Assembly (NCBI GenBank): GCA_025594325.1
Contig: JANHCV010000005.1
Coordinates: 496,001-560,000, forward strand
From: Blastocladiella emersonii ATCC 22665
Lineage: Eukaryota > Fungi > Blastocladiomycota
DNA length: 64,000 bases
Reading direction: 5' to 3'
In this document: piece by piece, positions 1,689-9,468 of the stretch
Layout of the letters: every line of letters starts with the position of its first letter
How positions within the stretch are numbered: the stretch's first letter is position 1
Program-made: the position numbers and the translations under genes
The notes under the pieces: generated by a model
Database searches by the model: none
Told to the model about the DNA's origin: nothing
What the model saw: the letters and a program-made list of their open reading frames with translations, nothing else

Positions 1689-2021
1689 TCAACGAATCAA
1701 GCTTGCAGATGAAGAGGTTTGACTGTACTCGTTCGTCGCACCAACGACGTTGACGAGTAATTTGAAGCCCCAGCGGCCAAGACGCGCGAGCGATTTGATG
1801 GCCGAGATGACGCCCAAAATGAGAAGGACCGTGAGGACGACCATGTTTGTGTCGTCAATCGCCCATGTCACAAACTGCGGCAGAAACATCACGCACTTGA
1901 TTCTAGCAACCAAGAAAGGGATGATGATATTGGCGGGAAGGAATGCGATGGCCAGAACCAAAAGCACTGCGAGAACACGCGCCAACGCATGAACGAAGTG
2001 CAAGCGGGCGTTCGGAACGGG
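1689..2021 (-). pseudogene. 3' part of a split small membrane-protein gene (PVPNARLHF...SSSASLIR*)
   Basis: Hydrophobic ORF tail that begins at the 5-bp target site CCCGT (2017-2021, minus strand) and joins in frame to the ORF start at 3388-3536. Confidence 0.65.
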
Positions 2022-2775
2022 CGGGTAGAGGTCGCGGAGGTTTCGGAGGAAGGTGGCTGGGTCTTGGCAGTTGCCGCGGGTTGGGTGGCGGTAGTTGATG
2101 CGGGTGCTCTCGATGTCGGTGCGCAGCTGCTTGTCGACGCTGGTGGTCGACGCGGCGGGAGCGGCTGGCGAGGCGGCGGCCGGCGCGGCCGGGGGCGCCT
2201 CAGCGGGCAGCATGTCGACGGCGAGGTTGATGATGTTGTTGTAGCGCGAGTGCGCGGCGATGAGCGCGTCCAGCGCCTTGGCGGCCTGGGCCTGCAGCTT
2301 GGGCGGGTGGGTGGCCGACGTGCCGTTGCCCTGGGACGGCGCGGGTTGCGCGGCGGCGTCGATGGCGGCCGAGCAGGCAGCGAATTGCTCACCGAGTAGC
2401 TGGCGCAGCTCGGCGGCGCGCGCGCGTGCGGCGGGCACGGCCTGGGGGTCCTTGGCCGCGGTGCTGCAGGTGCCGGGGAGCGCGGAGATGTCGCTGCAGA
2501 GCGCCGGCGAGATGATGAAGGTGGGGTTCGAGGCCATGTGGAAAACTACTTGAAAAAAATGTTGATGCCGACAGAAGGAGGCGGGAGACAAGTAGTCAGG
2601 GATGTCTATTCCTGCCTTCGGCCCCGAACCCAAGACGGGGAGAGGGGAGAATGGATAACAAAGCAGGGCGCGCCGCAGCGGGGTGCGGAAGCGCGGGAGC
2701 GAGGGATTGCGGGCGGCTCACGCGAGATCAGATGATTGATCACCGCGGTCGTGGCCACATGAACGACACGCAACA
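2022..2775 (-). mobile_element. Truncated inverted copy of the Ty3/Gypsy element (5' LTR, leader and gag N-terminus, 754 bp)
   Basis: Reverse complement of 3537-4290, with an identical gag translation up to LRDLYP; the only difference I found is one LTR base (2689 vs 3623). Confidence 0.95.
2560..2775 (-). repeat. LTR (216 bp) of the truncated copy
   Basis: TGTTG...CAACA termini on the minus strand; matches the LTRs at 3537 and 8673. Confidence 0.95.
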
Positions 2776-3387
2776 AAGAGCGTTAGACTTGTCACTCGGA
2801 CTCACTGCGATGGCAGCTAGTCGCTGGACCTCAACCAGAGCGCTGCTGCGCGACAAAGCGATGGCGACACGGACTGCAGTGAGACCGAAAGAAGACGGCG
2901 ATGCCGTATATATCTGGGCAGTCTGCGCAGGCGTTCGCTGAGCGGGTCCGCAGCGCTCATCTCGACCAGCGACCGTTCCACCACGGGTCCATGCATCGCG
3001 GCTACCTTGATTGTCACGCGACGGCAAGAAGCAGACGCCTTCATAGGCGGTGATGGGAGATTCACGCTCAAGTCCTGCTCGTGACCGCAGAAGGGAGTGC
3101 GGGCCAGAGGTGCTGCGGCAAGGGTGAGTTGAACGGCGCGTCGGCGCGATGCGTCTGGGAGTCACCGCAGCCATTCCCATGCGCCCATCTGACGCGCGTG
3201 AGTTCGCTCCGGCCGCGCGCGCTTTTGCGCAGATCCTCGCTCTCCACATCAGCTGTGGAATTACTCTGCGCACTCAACGCACCATGCAACTTATGGAATT
3301 GGACTCGGTGATCTCAAAGTCTCTCTAAGCCAGCACCCCCGCGCTTCCGCTCGCAAGCTCACCCGACTCCAGTCCGCGCACCCAATC

Positions 3388-3536
3388 ATGCCCGTGCCAA
3401 ATGCTCCCGTGGGCTACGCCCTCAACCCTGAAATTTTGCAGTGCATGCGCGACATGCAAAAAAAATGGGTCATTGCCTTGCGCAACCCCAACTACAGGGC
3501 TGTCAACATTCGATTTGTACACCCAAACGTGCCCGT
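3388..3536 (+). pseudogene. 5' part of the split membrane-protein gene (MPVPNAPVG...HPNV-PV)
   Basis: ATG at 3388; codon 49 starts at the CCCGT target site (3532-3536) immediately before the LTR. Confidence 0.6.
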
Positions 3537-3752
3537 TGTTGCGTGTCGTTCATGTGGCCACGACCGCGGTGATCAATCATCTGATCTCGCGTGAGCCGCC
3601 CGCAATCCCTCGCTCCCGCGCTGCCGCACCCCGCTGCGGCGCGCCCTGCTTTGTTATCCATTCTCCCCTCTCCCCGTCTTGGGTTCGGGGCCGAAGGCAG
3701 GAATAGACATCCCTGACTACTTGTCTCCCGCCTCCTTCTGTCGGCATCAACA
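3537..3752 (+). repeat. 5' LTR
   Basis: TGTTG...CAACA; differs from the 3' LTR at one position (T3622 vs C8758). Confidence 0.95.
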
Positions 3753-3767
3753 TTTTTTTCAAGTAGT
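3753..3767 (+). promoter_or_regulatory. Non-tRNA primer-binding site candidate (TTTTTTT-CAAGTAGT)
   Basis: Directly follows the 5' LTR; lacks the TGG of tRNA PBSs; 3760-3767 is the reverse complement of LTR positions 3716-3723 and 8852-8859. Confidence 0.6.
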
Positions 3768-3774
3768 TTTCCAC

Positions 3775-5138
3775 ATGGCCTCGAACCCCACCTTCATCAT
3801 CTCGCCGGCGCTCTGCAGCGACATCTCCGCGCTCCCCGGCACCTGCAGCACCGCGGCCAAGGACCCCCAGGCCGTGCCCGCCGCACGCGCGCGCGCCGCC
3901 GAGCTGCGCCAGCTACTCGGTGAGCAATTCGCTGCCTGCTCGGCCGCCATCGACGCCGCCGCGCAACCCGCGCCGTCCCAGGGCAACGGCACGTCGGCCA
4001 CCCACCCGCCCAAGCTGCAGGCCCAGGCCGCCAAGGCGCTGGACGCGCTCATCGCCGCGCACTCGCGCTACAACAACATCATCAACCTCGCCGTCGACAT
4101 GCTGCCCGCTGAGGCGCCCCCGGCCGCGCCGGCCGCCGCCTCGCCAGCCGCTCCCGCCGCGTCGACCACCAGCGTCGACAAGCAGCTGCGCACCGACATC
4201 GAGAGCACCCGCATCAACTACCGCCACCCAACCCGCGGCAACTGCCAAGACCCAGCCACCTTCCTCCGAAACCTCCGCGACCTCTACCCGCTGCACAACC
4301 TGTACAAGCTGCTCAACGCCGCCACCACCACCGTCAGCCACGACGCCCAGGTCGTGTACAAGTCGATGGTCCGCGAGGGCGCCGGTCTTGAGGAGCACCA
4401 GCTGATCGCCCACTTCTTTGACCACATGGACCGCGCCGCCATCGTCCGCTACCTCGACCTCTTGTTCCCCGCCACTCTGGGCCTCACCCTCGAGCGCCAC
4501 CGCGTTGTGTTTGTCCGGCGTCTCCGCAAGGGGGGTTGCCTGGATCCCACCGGCCACCTGCCTCCCGCGCTCCTCTCCTCGTTCCTCAACTCGGTCAAGG
4601 GCATCAAGGACAACGTCTACAACGCCCTCTGCCACACGCTCGGCACCGCCACCTCCAAGCGCACCCCGCTCACGCTTGTCAACCTCATTGGCCCCCACGG
4701 CTACGTCCAGATCGCCTCGCGCAGCAAGGCGCCCGCTGGCAACGCTGGCGACGCCTCGTCCGCCGTGCCGGCCGCGCGCACAAGGACAAGGACAAGAACA
4801 AGAACAACAACAACTACAACAACAACAACAACAACAACTACAACAACTACAACAACAAGAACAACAACAACTACAACAACCACCGCGGCGGCGGTGCCCA
4901 CGACAAGAACGGCCACTACAACAAGGGCAAGGCCGGCCATGATGACCGCGCGTCCCGCGACGCCCCGCGCGCGCTTCTCGCCGTGCCCGACGACCGCCAT
5001 GATTGTGACCGTGGTGGCAGCGACGAGCGTCAGCGCTCGCGCTCCCGCTCCGCTGTGCGCGAGCGCGCCCCGCGCAACTACCACGCGGCCGTGGCGCCCA
5101 TCTGGCCCGCGGGTCTTGAGACCAAGTTTGGCAGATGA
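3775..5138 (+). pseudogene. gag-like ORF with a probable frameshift near 4750-4780
   Basis: ATG at 3775 just after the PBS. G/C-ending codon usage moves to the KDKDKNKNNN... frame after about 4780, which ends at 5138. Confidence 0.7.
4781..4881 (+). repeat. (AAC)n-rich microsatellite inside gag
   Basis: Run of AAC/AAG/TAC triplets, reading as poly-Asn or poly-Thr depending on frame. Confidence 0.9.
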
Positions 5139-5559
5139 CCTCGAGCGCTCCCGCTCCAAGTTCGTCTCCTCGCCTGCCCGCGCGGTCAACAGCATTCCCC
5201 GCCCCCAGCCCCTGCTCGCCCACCACCTCCGTTGTCCTCGCCCTCCTGCCGGCGTCCGCCACCAGCCTGTTCGCGCACCTGCTTGACAAGTTCTACCACA
5301 TCATTGTTGGCTCCCGCCTCGGCCCCACCTCGGCCCGCGCTGCCACCGTCACCCACAACGATCCCCTTTGCGGCCGCCTCGGTCCCGTCGCGCATTTCGC
5401 CGCCCCCGCCCGCTCTGGTGCGCGCTGTGAGCACGACGGCGCCGGTGTGGTCGACCCCGACTGGCTGGGCACGCCCGCATTTTTGTGACCTGGGCATGCG
5501 CGTCCATCTGCGACCTGTACATGGCGCTTGTCGCTCACAATAATAATATCTCTGACCTC

Positions 5560-5874
5560 ATCATTCCGGCTCTATCCAGCCCGATGTCGTCTTTGCGCGC
5601 TCGTTCGGCTGCGGCGAACCGCACGCCCATTCGCAGCGAGCCTTCTCAGTGCTACCCGGCGTTCCTGACCGTGCGTGCAGACCTGTTCCTCGACGACATC
5701 ATTCCGGCTCTATCCAGCCCGATGTTGTCTTCGCGCGCTCGTTTGGCTGCGGTGAACCGCACGCCCGTTCGCAGCGAGCCTTCTCAGTGCTACCCGGCGT
5801 TCCTGACCGTGCGTGCAGACCTGTTCCTTGACAACATCATTCCGGCTCTATCCAGCCCGATGTCGTCGTCGCGC
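5560..5874 (+). repeat. 138-bp (46-codon) tandem repeat, about 2.3 copies, at the RT N-terminus
   Basis: ATCATTCCGGCTCTATCCAGCCCGATG recurs at 5560, 5698 and 5836. Confidence 0.95.
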
Positions 5875-6885
5875 GGCCCGTTTGGCATCAAGACCCTCTC
5901 GGCGCAGTTCCGGGCCGTCATGTCCAACATCTTCCACGACATGCCATTCGTGCGCGTCTTCATTGACGATCTCGTCATCTTCTCGGCCTTGGTCAAGGAG
6001 CACACGCAGCACCTCGTCCTCGTTGTCTACCATCTCACGCGGTGGAACCCCCGCCTCAACCCCGCCAAGTGCTTCTTCTACTGCGCACGCATGCACCTGC
6101 TCAGCCACGTCGTCTTGGCCGAGGGCGTGCAGCCCGCCAAGGCCAAGGTCGTCTCGATCCGCAACTGGCCGCGCCCAACGTCTGGCAACCAGGTCCAGAA
6201 GTTCCTCAGCCTCGTCAACTACCTGCGCGCCTACATCCCGCTCGCCGCGGTCCTCATGCACCCGCTCGACGCGCTGCGCAACCTCAAGCGCATCGACCTC
6301 GACGTCCGCAACGTGTGGACCGACGAGTGCGAGCAGGCGTTCCTCGCCTTAAAGGCCGCCGTCGCCGCCGCCGCCGCCCCATGTCTCGCGCCGCCTGATT
6401 TCTCCAAGCCGTTCTTCGTCGCTACCAACGCCTCAAACGTCCGTCTCGGCGCCGTCCTGTTCCAGGGTAGCCGCGAGTCCCCGCGCTACATCTCGTTTGC
6501 CTCTCGCTCTCTGCAGCCCGCCAAGCAGAACTACTCGGCCACCAAGCGCGAGCTCCTCGGCATCGTCTTCGCGCTCACTCGCTTCTTCTACTACCTCCAC
6601 GGCCGCCGTTTCGCGTTGTTCACGGACCACGCGGCGCTCACCCACATGTTCACGCAGAAGCGCCTGTCACCCATCCTCGAAAACTGGCTTGACACGCTGC
6701 TCTCCCTCTCGTTCTTGGTCACGCACCTCCCCAGCGTCCTGAACGTGCTGCCCGACATCCTGTCGCGCCTGTATAATACCGACGCCCGTGCCCATCTCGT
6801 CGCCATCAACCGCGCCGGCCGTTGTCCTGTATCGCGTTCCCCCCGTGGGCGCCCGCTGGTGGGGGGGGGTCCCTCCGGATCCTCT

Positions 6886-7266
6886 CCCGCGCCGTCTCTC
6901 CCCGAGTGTGCCCTCGGCGACGGCGAGCTCGAGCAGCTCATGACGCACAATCTCTCCCTCGCGGAGAATTGTGCTCAACACTTTTTCCTCGCGCCGGCCT
7001 CGCTCCTGCCCGCGGAGCGGGCCCGCGCTTTTGCTGCCGCACCCACCCATGGGGGCAGCTCTTCTTCAACACCCGCGCCGTCTCTCCCCGAGTGTGCCCT
7101 CGGCGACGGCGAGCTCGAGCAGCTCATGACGCACGATCTCTCCCTTGCGGAGAATCGTGCTCGACACTTCTTCCTCGCGCCGGCCTCGCTCCCGCCCGCG
7201 GAGCGGGCCCGCGCTTTCGCTGCCGCACCCACCCATGGGGGCAGCTCTTCTTCAACACCTGCGCCC
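6886..7266 (+). repeat. 186-bp (62-codon) tandem duplication between RNase H and integrase
   Basis: PAPSLPECALGDGELEQLMTH... unit starts at 6886 and 7072, with a partial third start at 7258. Confidence 0.95.
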
Positions 7267-8660
7267 GCCGTGCACGCCCGCGTCGTCGCCGCCGCACCCG
7301 CCCCCGAGGGTAGCGCGCCGCGGCCCGAGTTCTCGCCCATCGGCACCATCCCGCCCGCGCAGCGCCTCAACACGGCGCCCGTTCCGCGTGACCAGCGCGA
7401 CCAAATCATCCGCGACTTGCACGACTGGGGGCCACTCGGGTCCCGCGGCCACACAGCAGCAGCTCGTCGTCCTCGGCCACGAATGGCCTGGCATGCTCGC
7501 CGACTGCCAGCGCGTCATTGCTGGTTGCATCCCGTGCGCGCGGTTCTTGGCCACGCGGCAGGGTTTCCACCCGATGCGCTCGATTGAGGCGCTGCTGCCG
7601 CTCGACCACCTGTCCATGGACTGCATGCAGCTGCCCATCTCGCCCGACGGATACACGCACGTGCTCGTGATCATCAACATCTGCACCCGGTTCGCGTGGC
7701 TACACCCGATCCGCTCCGCGTCTGCTGGCGAGGTCGCCACCTGCTTCCTGGCCACGTGCTTCCAGTTCGGTTTCCCGCGCATCATCCAGTCCGACAACGG
7801 CCCCGAGTTCGCCAACCAGATCATCGCCTCGCTCGCCGACATGGCCGGCATCGACTGCCGCCTCGTGTCGCCGTACCACCCGCAGGCCAATGGCGCCTCG
7901 GAGCGTCTCGTTCGCTCGGTCAAGGAGATGCTGCTCCCCTCGCTCAACGGGCAGCTCAACCGCTGGCCCGCCATGGTCCCGGCCATCCAGTACGCCTACA
8001 ACACGCGCGCGCACGCGCGCCACGGCTCGACGCCCTTCTCGCTCATGTTCGCGCGTCCCGCCAACGCGCTCCGCGACTACCGCGCGCAGCCGCCCCTCCG
8101 CGACATGACCAAGCAGGAGCAGCTCGCTCACCTCAAGCTCATGACCGAGTCCATCTACCCCGCGCACCACCTGCGCCTCATCCAGCCCGAGTCGGCGCCT
8201 TTGGGCGAATCGGACACCATGCGCAACATCCTCCGTCATCGCCGGCGCGAACGGCGAGCGCGAGTACCTGGTCCGCTGGTCCGATCGCTCCGCCAAGAAC
8301 TCGTGGATCCCCGCCAGCAGCTTCGACACCGCCGGCGCCATCAACAACTACCACAAGAAGATCTCGGCCAACACCTGGCTCGAGCGCCAGCGTTCGCTGC
8401 AGCGTCTCGCCCCCAAGGTCGCCACGTCTTCCCCTGTGCCCGCTCCACGCCAAGATCCTGCTCCTCGCCAAGTCTCGGCCGACAAGTCGCAGTTCTCGGT
8501 CACGCAGTCCTCAGCCGCCTCATCGCCCGCCCGCGCCAACCCGAAGCGCGCGCGCTCACCCTCGCCCGACCCGCCGTCGTCCATCACGCGCAGCTGGTCC
8601 GGTCGCCAGCTCAAGAACGCGGTGCACCAAGGGTTCGTCAAGTCGCTCAGGTCACGGTCT

Positions 8661-8672
8661 GGGGGGAGGTGA
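8661..8672 (+). promoter_or_regulatory. Polypurine tract
   Basis: GGGGGGAGGTGA immediately before the 3' LTR. Confidence 0.85.
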
Positions 8673-8888
8673 TGTTGCGTGTCGTTCATGTGGCCACGAC
8701 CGCGGTGATCAATCATCTGATCTCGCGTGAGCCGCCCGCAATCCCTCGCTCCCGCGCCGCCGCACCCCGCTGCGGCGCGCCCTGCTTTGTTATCCATTCT
8801 CCCCTCTCCCCGTCTTGGGTTCGGGGCCGAAGGCAGGAATAGACATCCCTGACTACTTGTCTCCCGCCTCCTTCTGTCGGCATCAACA
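8673..8888 (+). repeat. 3' LTR
   Basis: TGTTG...CAACA, followed by CTCTT (8889-8893). Confidence 0.95.
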
Positions 8889-9468
8889 CTCTTGTCGCAC
8901 GAGCGGCACATGGATCAATCGCCTCGCACGAGAAGCACATGGATCTAATGCCAACTTCGCGTCGTTCGTGTTGCGCGGGTCGAAGGCGCAAGTTGATGCG
9001 GCGATCCACTGTTGGTGGTCTGGGCCGATCGCGGGATGTGAGGCCTTGCGGTCGACCATGAACCGTAGTGTGGCCACTACGCAGCTCATAACAAGCGAGA
9101 CGACGAAGAGATGTCCAACCTAGGGCTACGAGGAACGGACCTGTTCCTCGCCACGATCCCGCGCAGCCCCGGCCGTGGAACTCGCCGACCACACAGATTG
9201 TTGCCGAGGCCAAGTCGAGGGCTAAAGCCCTCTATTTTTCCCTAGGTGACGCGCCCGGTAGGAGCGTGACGTGTCTCCCTGGCCCACGTGCGTCACCCAC
9301 GTGTTTCACGGGATATAACCAACGCGCCCGAGTCTCCCACCCTCAAGCTCTCTCGCCTGCAGTCAATCGTGATAGTAACAAAAAAAAATCAAATATTGTG
9401 AATGAGAGGACAGCAACAACAAAAGAGGGAAACCGAGGAAGTGGAGAGAGGAACACGACGTCGTTCAG

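Follow-up and report, generated by a model that had tools for sequence, protein, structure and literature searches.

A candidate poly(A)-end self-priming LTR retrotransposon of the chromovirus type in Blastocladiella emersonii

The choice of primer is a defining step in the replication of LTR retroelements. To our knowledge, only a few solutions to this step have been described, namely a full tRNA, a tRNA fragment (half-tRNA), and a Tf1-type 5' self-primer. Self-priming from the 5' end is a known mechanism in the related chromoviruses Tf1, Tf2, and Tj1, by experiment or from sequence (PMC4600332, PMC7175516), and has been predicted for 83% of the plant Tcn1-clade elements (PMC6317226). Two further groups have been described in which a pyrimidine-rich or thymine-rich tract stands where a primer-binding site (PBS) would be sought. 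In the Skipper chromoviruses of dictyostelids and Protostelium, a polypyrimidine stretch after the left LTR, with a characteristic C, replaces the TGG-type PBS (Spaller et al. 2016, PMC5006619). The authors reported no complementary LTR region, thought that the feature was absent from other organisms, and judged a simple poly(A) stretch within the element to be an unlikely self-primer owing to the C in the tract (PMC5006619). SM-Tcn1 of Selaginella (Novikova et al. 2010, PMC2864245), a Tcn1-clade chromovirus, lacks a recognisable PBS, and the stretch from its 5' LTR to gag contains a thymine-rich sequence that is conserved. Its describers reported no LTR complement and left open how the element is primed.

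The window analysed here is a stretch of 64,000 nt from B. emersonii ATCC 22665 (contig JANHCV010000005.1, positions 496,001 to 560,000). A 5.35-kb element of the Ty3/gypsy type spans window positions 3537-8888. Its features, and those of a second copy, are as follows (window coordinates).

3537 to 3752, plus strand: 5' LTR, 216 bp, TGTTG...CAACA, a direct repeat of 8673-8888
3702 to 3707, plus strand: AATAGA, read from the sequence as a candidate poly(A)-signal variant (8838-8843 in the 3' LTR)
3716 to 3723, plus strand: LTR arm ACTACTTG, which may be the 3' end of R (poly(A) site), the 5' end of the transcript, or both
3724 to 3752, plus strand: pyrimidine-rich 29-nt stretch from the arm to the LTR end, the putative U5 if a poly(A) primer is used, as suggested by the layout shared with relatives
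3753 to 3759, plus strand: T7 run directly 3' of the LTR
3760 to 3767, plus strand: leader arm CAAGTAGT, the exact complement of 3716-3723
3775 to 5286, plus strand: first long ORF, presumed gag, beginning 22 nt past the LTR
5485 to 8842, plus strand: pol remnants in two overlapping frames (C-terminal part of RT, RNase H, integrase, weak chromodomain)
8661 to 8672, plus strand: polypurine tract GGGGGGAGGTGA, adjoining the 3' LTR and identical in 14/14 full-length copies
8673 to 8888, plus strand: 3' LTR, TGTTG...CAACA, carrying the arm ACTACTTG at 8852-8859
2005 to 2775, minus strand: second, truncated copy, head-to-head with the first, with a gag fragment down to about 2017
2775 to 2560 (LTR), 2596 to 2589 (LTR arm), 2559 to 2553 (T7), and 2552 to 2545 (leader arm CAAGTAGT), minus strand: parts of the truncated copy

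We classify the element as a Ty3/gypsy LTR retrotransposon of the chromovirus type. The Pfam matches in pol are, in order, RVT_1, RT_RNaseH, Integrase_H2C2, and rve, which corresponds to RT, RNase H, and integrase, and a Pfam search of the first long ORF (3775-5286) gave no match. The top solved-structure match of a sister copy, L031, is Ty3 Gag-Pol (7q5b, E = 3.8e-62). A candidate chromodomain (PF00385) at the C-terminus of the integrase reached 16 bits (E = 0.011), short of the cut-off of 25.1, but spanned profile positions 3-52 of 53; this domain is present in nearly all close homologues. In the window copy, internal tandem duplications occupy 5554-5829 and 6865-7236. CAACA is the exact end of the LTR, because perfect 5-bp target-site duplications (TSDs) flank 12 of the 14 full-length copies of the B. 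emersonii family. A GGGRGGTGA/TGTTG motif, in which the slash marks the junction of polypurine tract and LTR, was also found in relatives. The upstream flank of the truncated copy, CTCTT, is the same as the flank past the 3' LTR of the first copy (8889-8893), which shows an inversion between the two copies that swapped the flanks of the window element. Further Ty3/gypsy families in the same genome have pol identities of 48%, 38%, and 33%.

The leader, which separates the 5' LTR from the gag start codon at 3775, is 22 nt long. An initial annotation of this locus had placed the LTRs, the T-run, the two 8-mers, and AATAGA at coordinates that all agree with the sequence. It had also described the leader as lacking a TGG or tRNA-type PBS, and indeed no TGG precedes the gag ATG; the first one, at 3776, lies within the start codon context. 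The leader arm complements the LTR arm exactly, as had been claimed, and one additional wobble pair is possible (G3715:T3768). By our own calculation, a 22-nt leader would find an 8-mer complement in a 216-nt LTR approximately 0.02-0.05 times by chance. The stem formed by 3716-3723 and 3760-3767 has a free energy of -8.8 kcal/mol (z = -3.5 versus shuffles), and the distance from the end of AATAGA to the end of the LTR arm is 16 nt.

This pairing is conserved within the family. Apart from the 5' LTR of copy L004, the pair of LTR arm and leader arm has been kept in the 19 copies with a leader, which have otherwise drifted. The arm itself is unchanged in 17 of the 18 listed LTRs that are followed by a leader, the exception being the 5' LTR of L004, which reads TCTACTTG. 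The run directly after the LTR is more variable. The seven T's of the initial annotation are present in both window copies and represent the minority form (6/19), as 13 of the 19 genomic copies read TTTTCTT. The C-form is carried by the youngest copies, with identical LTRs in L031, one difference in L032, and two in L034. Grouping of the T7 copies as a single clade was not rejected (p-AU of 0.47), in a star-like tree whose divergence consists mostly of CpG transitions. An alternative register for the C-form, GAAG plus A4 at LTR position -56, was rejected, as it offers only 4 informative nt (p = 0.19) and its position is upstream of the hexamer. Copy L004 is truncated but keeps an intact TSD, and its LTR is fused to a fragment of gag exactly at (G)ACTACTTG.

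One layout is common to eight related chromovirus families, including a young element of Mucor velutinosus. An AATAAA-like hexamer comes first, then an LTR arm (5-8 nt, with its end 13-24 nt past the hexamer), usually an A, and a U5 region ending in CA; T5-10 comes directly after the LTR, and then the complement of the arm. The M. velutinosus element has T6 after the LTR, with the LTR end set by the TSDs ATAAA and CACTG, and it is probably still active because its LTRs are 100% identical. Among the other families, the run is T6 in L110, T8 in L074, T7 in L161, T8 in L077, T6 in L081, T8 in L137, and T7 in L132; L081, L137, and L132 come from circularly assembled metagenome contigs, and their LTR 3' ends are deduced. 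A T-run was also seen in L158, L084, L098, and L082, families without a clear arm. Arm matches in L098 (-230) and L084 (-157) were outside the LTR or discontinuous with the run, and were left uncounted as support. L162, a sister of L074, has no clear T-run at its putative LTR end.

The arms differ from family to family, each matching its own LTR. The pairs of LTR arm and leader arm are ACTACTTG/CAAGTAGT, TCATTTGA/TCAAATGA, TCCTTGA/TCAAGGA, TCGTTA/TAACGA, TCAAAGAA/TTCTTTGA, CAAGTT/AACTTG, GATCTTA/TAAGATC, and AACCGA/TCGGTT. For arms contiguous with the run, the Fisher combined p was 0.0024 over 10 T-run families, with the B. emersonii family entered conservatively in its C-form; family by family, the p-values ranged from 0.01 to 0.8. 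An exact AATAAA ends 13-24 nt before the arm end in 5 of the 8 families against a background of 7.4% (binomial p = 1e-4), and the remaining three have AATAGA, TATAAA, or AATATA at 14-16 nt. The arm is directly followed by an A in 7/8 families, and in most of them by T- or GT-rich sequence. The distance from the start of the TATA box to the arm is 45 nt in L081, 52 nt in the Mucor element, and 64 nt in L077, which places TATA+30 at or past the hexamer and not at the arm in all three.

Based on this layout, minus-strand DNA synthesis in the B. emersonii family is most likely self-primed from the poly(A) 3' end of the RNA, and not from the 5' end as in Tf1, a reading that we hold with a little less than even confidence. 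Cleavage just past the LTR arm (after 8859 in the 3' LTR) and poly(A) addition would give the transcript a 3' end that reads ...ACUACUUG-A(n). The partner of this end would be the T-run and CAAGUAGU in the leader of the same or a co-packaged RNA. Much as RNase H generates the primer of Tf1, cutting or trimming would then shorten the A-tail at the edge of the duplex. Extension would proceed from the last paired A, which faces the first T past the LTR, and the DNA would start exactly at the terminal A of the LTR. As the strong-stop DNA would stay tethered beside the 3' R, a very short R would be enough for the first strand transfer. The layout, its conservation in the family, its recurrence with different arms in distant relatives, the position of the arm relative to the hexamer, and the lack of a tRNA partner are observations; where polyadenylation occurs, that the two sequences pair, that the tail is trimmed, and how reverse transcription proceeds at each step are what we infer.

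The layout fits a 3'-end or poly(A) self-primer better than Tf1-type 5' self-priming, and the former is preferred because the latter leaves the conserved T-run unexplained; as an unpaired spacer, the run has no reason to remain homopolymeric. The end of the LTR arm falls at the position expected of a poly(A) site, and only a primer ending in A's sets its putative 3' OH at the verified LTR boundary. Across the families, the predicted pairing of arm plus A-tail with the leader comprises 12-15 bp with -10.2 to -12.7 kcal/mol, including -12.1 for the C-form, and reaches -15.7 kcal/mol for the T7 form of the B. emersonii family; the arms alone give 5-8 bp and closed hairpins of -1.2 to -6.1 kcal/mol. 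The duplex of ACUACUUG plus A7 described in the initial annotation, 15 nt long with its 3' end exactly at the LTR boundary, would hold for the T7 form, and in most copies, the youngest included, the C would mismatch the A-tail. This A·C mismatch between the poly(A) tail and TTTTCTT is five positions from the primer end and counts against the reading. If the plus strand copies a poly(A) primer, T7 should moreover keep being renewed, and the distribution of T7 and TTTTCTT is compatible with such renewal as well as with simple inheritance. A further point against the model is that poly(A) tails are normally long, which makes a putative trimming or cleavage step necessary. A genome search for retro-copies with the LTR arm plus poly(A), or with poly(A) further downstream in U5, found none. 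On balance, poly(A)-end priming, as first suggested in the initial annotation, gains from the T-run, arm, and hexamer layout of the relatives and loses from the internal C and from the L004 junction at the 8-mer, which hints at a transcript start that the initial annotation itself had counted as contrary to its reading.

Rather unlikely in our view, Tf1-type 5' self-priming is the explanation with an established precedent in related chromoviruses, and it is predicted for most plant Tcn1-clade elements. In this scenario, the transcript would start at ACUACUUG (3716), its 5' end would fold onto CAAGUAGU, and RNase H would cut after the arm. The 8-nt RNA would be extended through the T-run and U5, the T-run would be a mere spacer, and integrase would remove the extra nucleotides. 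The 8-bp stem is part of the minimum-energy fold, and the extra nucleotides have a parallel, as about half of the Tf1 cDNA retains the PBS as a 3' extension and long overhangs past CA are tolerated there (PMC11042837). The geometry is nevertheless unfavourable. The Tf1 PBS abuts the LTR (PMC11042837), whereas the 8 bp begin here after 7 nt, and the element falls outside the published detection criterion, which asks for 10 bp or more beginning 0-5 nt past the LTR (PMC6317226). Self-priming from the 5' end gives no reason for a T-run spacer in 12 related families (the B. emersonii family included), leaves weak stems in three families (arms of 5-6 bp closing loops of 31-91 nt, -1.2 to -2.8 kcal/mol), and is at odds with TATA boxes that are 45-64 nt, not approximately 30 nt, ahead of the arm in three relatives. 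The L004 junction can be read in both directions. It lies exactly at the arm start, as expected if the RNA begins there, and if it records the end of strong-stop DNA, it hints at an RNA that starts at the arm with an R of only 8-9 nt. In such a short-R element the hexamer would be near both ends of R, so the hexamer statistic alone is compatible with the Tf1 type. Priming in cis, however, should remove the arm from the strong-stop DNA, yet the junction includes it.

The same pairing could also serve as a bridge only, with the T-run held by the poly(A) tail and the leader arm by the 3' R, thereby circularising the genomic RNA and helping the first strand transfer, while the actual primer is another RNA such as a fragment of the 5' arm. 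The conserved T-run and the geometry of arm and hexamer are explained as well by such a bridge as by poly(A)-end priming. It is improbable, as it requires a second primer where no tRNA or other genomic complement of the leader was found, and the paired tail would fill the sole place at which synthesis could start at the LTR boundary. We assign a similarly small probability to a Skipper-like polypyrimidine tract that acts independently of LTR pairing, with the complementarity being a U5-leader hairpin (for packaging or translation control) or chance. Skipper itself has the tract without an LTR complement according to its describers (PMC5006619), the arm p-values of single families are unimpressive, and four T-run families have no clear arm; against this stand the combined p for arms contiguous with the run, the tie between the arm and a poly(A)-type hexamer, and the retention of the arm/leader pair in 19 copies that have otherwise drifted. 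Host-derived priming, in which a tRNA, a tRNA half, or another cellular RNA acts at the leader, is what one expects by default of an LTR element, and here it is very improbable indeed. The 22 nt past the LTR contain no TGG, and the arm of each family changes together with the LTR of that family. When the genome was searched for the complement of leader nt 1-16, allowing up to 2 mismatches, it yielded the element copies and three matches at the level of the reversed-pattern control. Among 30 distinct host tRNA sequences (24 anticodon types, a part of the full set), matches were at most 7 nt and none adjoined the LTR, the longest one being at the gag start; the host tRNA complement that would have undermined the initial annotation is thus not among them. 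Based on these two comparisons, tRNA priming was rejected.

Priming from the element's own poly(A)-tailed RNA end is not known to have been described as a start mechanism and stands here as a proposal. The statement in the initial annotation that no similar mechanism was known needs qualifying, as a polypyrimidine tract that replaces the PBS has been published for Skipper (PMC5006619). Somewhat more tentatively than for the B. emersonii family itself, we suggest that a whole chromovirus branch may start its minus strand from its own polyadenylated 3' end. The proposed branch comprises the B. emersonii family, the M. velutinosus element, several families of uncultured eukaryotes, and possibly Skipper and the Tcn1 elements with T-rich leaders. 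Throughout this branch, the place of the PBS may be taken by a T-run joined to the complement of the 5-8 templated bases that immediately precede the tail.

The layout provides a concrete and falsifiable rule for the T-rich or polypyrimidine "non-PBS" class that was left unexplained in the papers of 2010 and 2016, with the order of hexamer, arm at the predicted cleavage site, U5, CA, T-run, and complement of the arm. This rule can be tested in a culturable, named fungus. If the proposal is true, a further mode of LTR priming would exist beside the tRNA, half-tRNA, and Tf1-type modes, and the tracts described in both papers would be explained. Very short R regions would be workable with strong-stop DNA tethered beside R, and an annotation rule would become available for elements that PBS finders now call "no PBS". 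If it is false, the family would self-prime in the Tf1 manner, and its unusual, conserved T spacer would still call for an explanation.

Compared to the known systems, the element is closest to Tf1, Tf2, Tj1, and the Tf1/sushi-Tcn1 group, with which it shares the chromovirus-type Ty3/gypsy organisation, the lack of a tRNA PBS, and a post-LTR sequence that complements a segment of the LTR. In the proposal presented here, it would also share a primer derived from its own RNA, whose end is generated by RNA cleavage at the border of an RNA:RNA duplex. In Tf1, the PBS adjoins the LTR, and the 11 nt to which it pairs are the very first of the mRNA (PMC7175516, PMC11042837). By contrast, the 8 bp of the B. 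emersonii element (5-8 in relatives) begin only past a run of T5-10, the arm is at the predicted poly(A) site and not 30 nt after a TATA box, and the proposed primer is the 3' copy of R plus oligo(A).

Skipper, compared by its description, resembles the element in its post-LTR tract and in the C within it, similar to the TTTTCTT of most B. emersonii copies. It differs in the complement, which is absent from the Skipper LTR as reported and is present here as 8 bp contiguous with the tract. The feature thought to be restricted to the Skipper hosts is found here in fungal (Mucor, Blastocladiella) and uncultured hosts, and a homologue search from an AT-rich relative returned no dictyostelid protein. 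SM-Tcn1, also compared by its published description, shares the chromovirus type, the unrecognisable PBS, and the thymine-rich leader, and differs in that no LTR complement has been reported for it. In Ty3, a bipartite 5'-3' primer-binding site (PMC5371799) likewise yields an initiation complex in which the 5' leader of the genomic RNA meets its 3' end region. There, however, the host tRNA(iMet) is both bridge and primer, whereas in the present proposal the 3' end would prime and no host RNA would be involved. In target-primed reverse transcription of poly(A)-tailed non-LTR elements, pairing between an A-tail and a T-run also positions the start; the T-rich strand is nicked genomic DNA and acts as the primer, and the A-tail is the template. 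In our proposal these roles would be swapped, with the A-tail as the primer and the U-run of the element's own RNA as the template.

The element at window positions 3537-8888 is an LTR retrotransposon of the Ty3/gypsy chromovirus branch. Its internal region codes for RT, followed by RNase H and integrase, and these domains recur in a 1094-aa pol frame of L031, a more intact sister copy in the same genome. The best solved-structure match of L031 is Ty3 Gag-Pol (E = 3.8e-62), and its chromodomain match, which spans the whole profile, lies below threshold (E = 0.011). In L031, the best sister copy, the Pfam RT profile is matched in the C-terminal half only, and the long frame has no protease match. 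The pol of the window copy carries two tandem duplications, at 5554-5829 (138 bp x2) and 6865-7236 (186 bp x2). The closest public proteins are chromovirus polyproteins from metagenomes and Mucoromycota (33-48% identity). The 1705-aa chromovirus polyprotein P0039 from Mucor velutinosus is publicly named '18S rRNA pseudouridine methyltransferase', which looks wrong, and P0001, a eukaryotic chromovirus pol in an Anabaena sp. MDT14b MAG, probably lies on a contaminating contig.

Features of the element and of the neighboring copy, as read in the window
3537-8888, plus strand: LTR retrotransposon, delimited by direct LTR repeats
3537-3752 and 8673-8888, plus strand: LTRs of 216 bp, TGTTG...CAACA
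3702-3707 and 8838-8843, plus strand: AATAGA, in both LTRs
3716-3723 and 8852-8859, plus strand: LTR arm ACTACTTG, exact complement of the leader arm, in both LTRs
3753-3759, plus strand: TTTTTTT (T7), directly 3' of the 5' LTR
3760-3767, plus strand: leader arm CAAGTAGT, adjoining the T-run
3775, plus strand: first ATG of a long ORF, leaving a 22-nt leader without TGG
8661-8672, plus strand: polypurine tract GGGGGGAGGTGA
2775..2560 (LTR), minus strand: second copy, truncated, head-to-head with the first, with the same leader

The coordinates in the initial annotation, including those of T7, both 8-mers, and AATAGA, were all correct. The reported lack of TGG after the 5' LTR holds across the whole leader, and the exact 8-mer complement between LTR and leader recurs in the leader of the second copy.

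In the host genome (32.6 Mb, 21 contigs), the leader is kept in at least 19 copies of the family. Perfect 5-bp TSDs flank 12 of the 14 full-length copies compared (13 fetched copies and the window copy), which places the LTR end exactly at CAACA and makes the T-run the first internal sequence. The window copy itself has two unlike flanks. CTCTT lies beside the 5' LTR of the minus copy (2776-2780) and the 3' LTR of the plus copy (8889-8893), while CCCGT precedes the 5' LTR of the plus copy (3532-3536) and recurs at the end of the minus copy's gag fragment (~2017-2026). The TSDs of the head-to-head copies (2005-8893) are therefore swapped by recombination between a full-length and a gag-truncated copy, with inversion of the intervening segment. 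The genome has other Ty3/gypsy families as well (G000:C20:894186-896171 and many loci at 38% identity), whose long open frames measure 1780, 1286, 1435, and 1662 aa.

Both 8-mers are constant in all copies except for two LTRs: one reads TCTACTTG, and the other, a solo LTR, reads ACTACTCG. Among the 19 leader-bearing copies, 6 have T7 and 13 have TTTTCTT (C-form), so that the seven T's of the initial annotation represent the less common form; the 13 include the youngest copies (LTR differences: L031, 0; L032, 1; L034, 2). Most of the divergence among 17 copies (L001-L017, first 1.8 kb) consists of C>T and G>A transitions, 269 of 309 of which fall at CpG sites, a signature that the family has undergone either methylation and deamination of CpG or a CpG-directed repeat-mutation process. 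These copies show heavy homoplasy and a star-like tree. The C/T site in the T-run is non-CpG, and a single T7 clade is not rejected (p-AU 0.47). Both forms have thus transposed, and this polymorphism does not discriminate between priming mechanisms.

A host RNA is a very improbable primer. When the whole genome was scanned for sequences complementary to leader nt 1-16, with up to 2 mismatches allowed, only element copies and three 2-mismatch matches were found, the level of the reversed-pattern control. Transfer RNA was rejected as primer: none of 30 distinct tRNA sequences (24 anticodon types, fetched tRNA loci) matches the leader over more than 7 nt, and no match adjoins the LTR. Some tRNA genes lie in tandemly repeated blocks with periods of ~6.8 kb (G000:C14:1-18442) and ~7.37 kb (G000:C1:2761-61790). 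The LTR-leader stem occurs within the minimum-energy fold (-8.8 kcal/mol, z = -3.5). With a calculated chance expectation of ~0.02-0.05, the 8-mer complementarity in one family alone is suggestive, not strong.

Relatives were gathered via protein matches and a metagenome scan. From ~85 loci, T-run families were chosen by eye and regex, and the arm and hexamer tests were applied afterwards to the chosen set. Wherever two LTR copies or TSDs fix the LTR end, the T-run directly follows the terminal CA. The same pattern is seen in the circularly assembled contigs L081, L137, L132, L098, and L082, where the LTR end is inferred, and in the linear contigs L084 and L158, each with a single LTR end only. 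In eight families, the bases directly after the T-run complement a family-specific LTR segment.

T-runs, evidence for the LTR end, and arms (LTR arm / leader arm) in the eight families
Window family: ACTACTTG / CAAGTAGT
L110: T6, two LTR ends; TCATTTGA / TCAAATGA
L074 and L161: T8 and T7, two LTR copies each; TCAAAGAA / TTCTTTGA
L077 (old copy): T8, two LTR copies; CAAGTT / AACTTG (3' LTR version)
Mucor velutinosus element: T6, LTRs 100% identical, TSDs ATAAA and CACTG; GATCTTA / TAAGATC
L081: TCCTTGA / TCAAGGA
L137: TCGTTA / TAACGA
L132: AACCGA / TCGGTT

In a permutation test of arm contiguity with the T-run, per-family p values were 0.01-0.8, and the Fisher combined p was 0.0024 over ten T-run families chosen beforehand by eye and regex, with the window family scored as C-form. 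In many relatives (L074 3431-3455, L083, L091-L093, L113, L133, and the Mucor velutinosus locus L163 2098-2122), the LTR starts with a short hairpin, TGTTG(N5-15)CAACA, directly after a conserved GGGRGGTGA polypurine tract; the window family keeps the tract and TGTTG and lacks the hairpin.

The layout tentatively favors priming from the element's own poly(A) end, to which we give somewhat less than an even chance. The RNA 3' end, made up of the arm and poly(A), would pair with the leader across the arm and the T-run, and the last paired A would be extended from the LTR boundary. The conserved, position-specific T-run would suit such a primer, and an exact start at the verified LTR end would be possible only with a primer ending in A. 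The arm also lies at a predicted cleavage site. In the eight families, it ends 13-24 nt 3' of an AATAAA-type hexamer, which is exactly AATAAA in 5/8 against a background of 7.4% (p = 1e-4) and AATAGA, TATAAA, or AATATA in the other three; an A directly follows in 7/8, and then T- or GT-rich sequence in most. The total duplex is nearly constant in length and energy although the arms are short and variable: arm plus A-tail pairs with the leader at -10.2 to -12.7 kcal/mol across families, including the C-form (-12.1), and at -15.7 kcal/mol in the T7 form. Hairpins closed by the arms alone reach -1.2 to -6.1 kcal/mol. Against this reading, the C in most window-family copies would leave one A·C mismatch, and a long tail would require trimming or cutting. 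The interpretation in the initial annotation is thus partly supported by sequence comparison and seems more credible than first expected. A mere hairpin or a Skipper-like mechanism is improbable; a bridge-only role of the tail pairing is given the same low weight.

Tf1-type priming, in which the RNA starts at the arm, folds back, and is cut to an 8-nt primer extended through the T-run, has precedent among related elements and is rather unlikely here. The hexamer statistic alone does not decide against it, because a short-R element has the hexamer near both R ends. The distance from the start of the TATA box to the arm is 45 nt in L081, 52 nt in the Mucor element, and 64 nt in L077. A transcript start at the usual +30 would lie at the hexamer or directly past it, upstream of the arm, which favors poly(A)-end priming. 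One truncated copy bears on both readings.

G000:C19 ~1545425-1545918, minus strand: L004, with full 5' LTR, leader, ~220 nt of gag, LTR positions 179/180-216, and perfect 5-bp TSD CCAGC

This structure is what would result if the first strand transfer had gone astray into gag and a normal plus-strand strong-stop DNA had completed the copy; the RNA would then begin at (G)ACUACUUG, as Tf1-type priming predicts. L004 is a single ambiguous witness, since a later internal deletion would also preserve the TSD. Its arms differ (TCTACTTG in the 5' LTR, ACTACTTG in the 3' LTR fragment), and the very presence of the arm argues against Tf1-type priming, which in cis would have taken it out of the strong-stop DNA. 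L004 is compatible with poly(A)-end priming if R is the 8-9 nt arm only; so short an R could function, since strong-stop DNA synthesized from the 3' end remains tethered beside R.

The PBS of Tf1 starts directly where the LTR ends and pairs with mRNA nt 1-11; a 3' extension of PBS sequence is kept by about half of Tf1 cDNA (PMC11042837; PMC7175516). Tj1 has been interpreted as a Tf1-like self-primer (PMC4600332), and plant Tcn1-clade elements are predicted to be self-primed under a rule that asks for 10 bp or more beginning 0-5 nt after the LTR (PMC6317226). The window element resembles these self-primed elements but lacks the LTR-abutting PBS, one of the features that define Tf1-type elements. 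For SM-Tcn1, Novikova et al. found a conserved T-rich leader and no PBS, and left the mechanism open (PMC2864245). In Skipper, the PBS is replaced by a polypyrimidine tract that contains a characteristic C; Spaller et al. found no LTR complement, thought the feature absent elsewhere, and suggested a novel kind of self-priming (PMC5006619). The polypyrimidine tract is common to Skipper and the window element, whereas the LTR complement is present only in the latter. As to the novelty claimed in the initial annotation, such tracts were thus already known, but full-text searches with incomplete literature coverage found no proposal that the polyadenylated 3' end of an LTR element serves as its primer. 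Neither the recurring layout nor its link to the predicted poly(A) site seems to have an earlier description. If confirmed, this would add a variant to the known forms of self-priming and would account for the tracts that the papers of 2010 and 2016 left unexplained.
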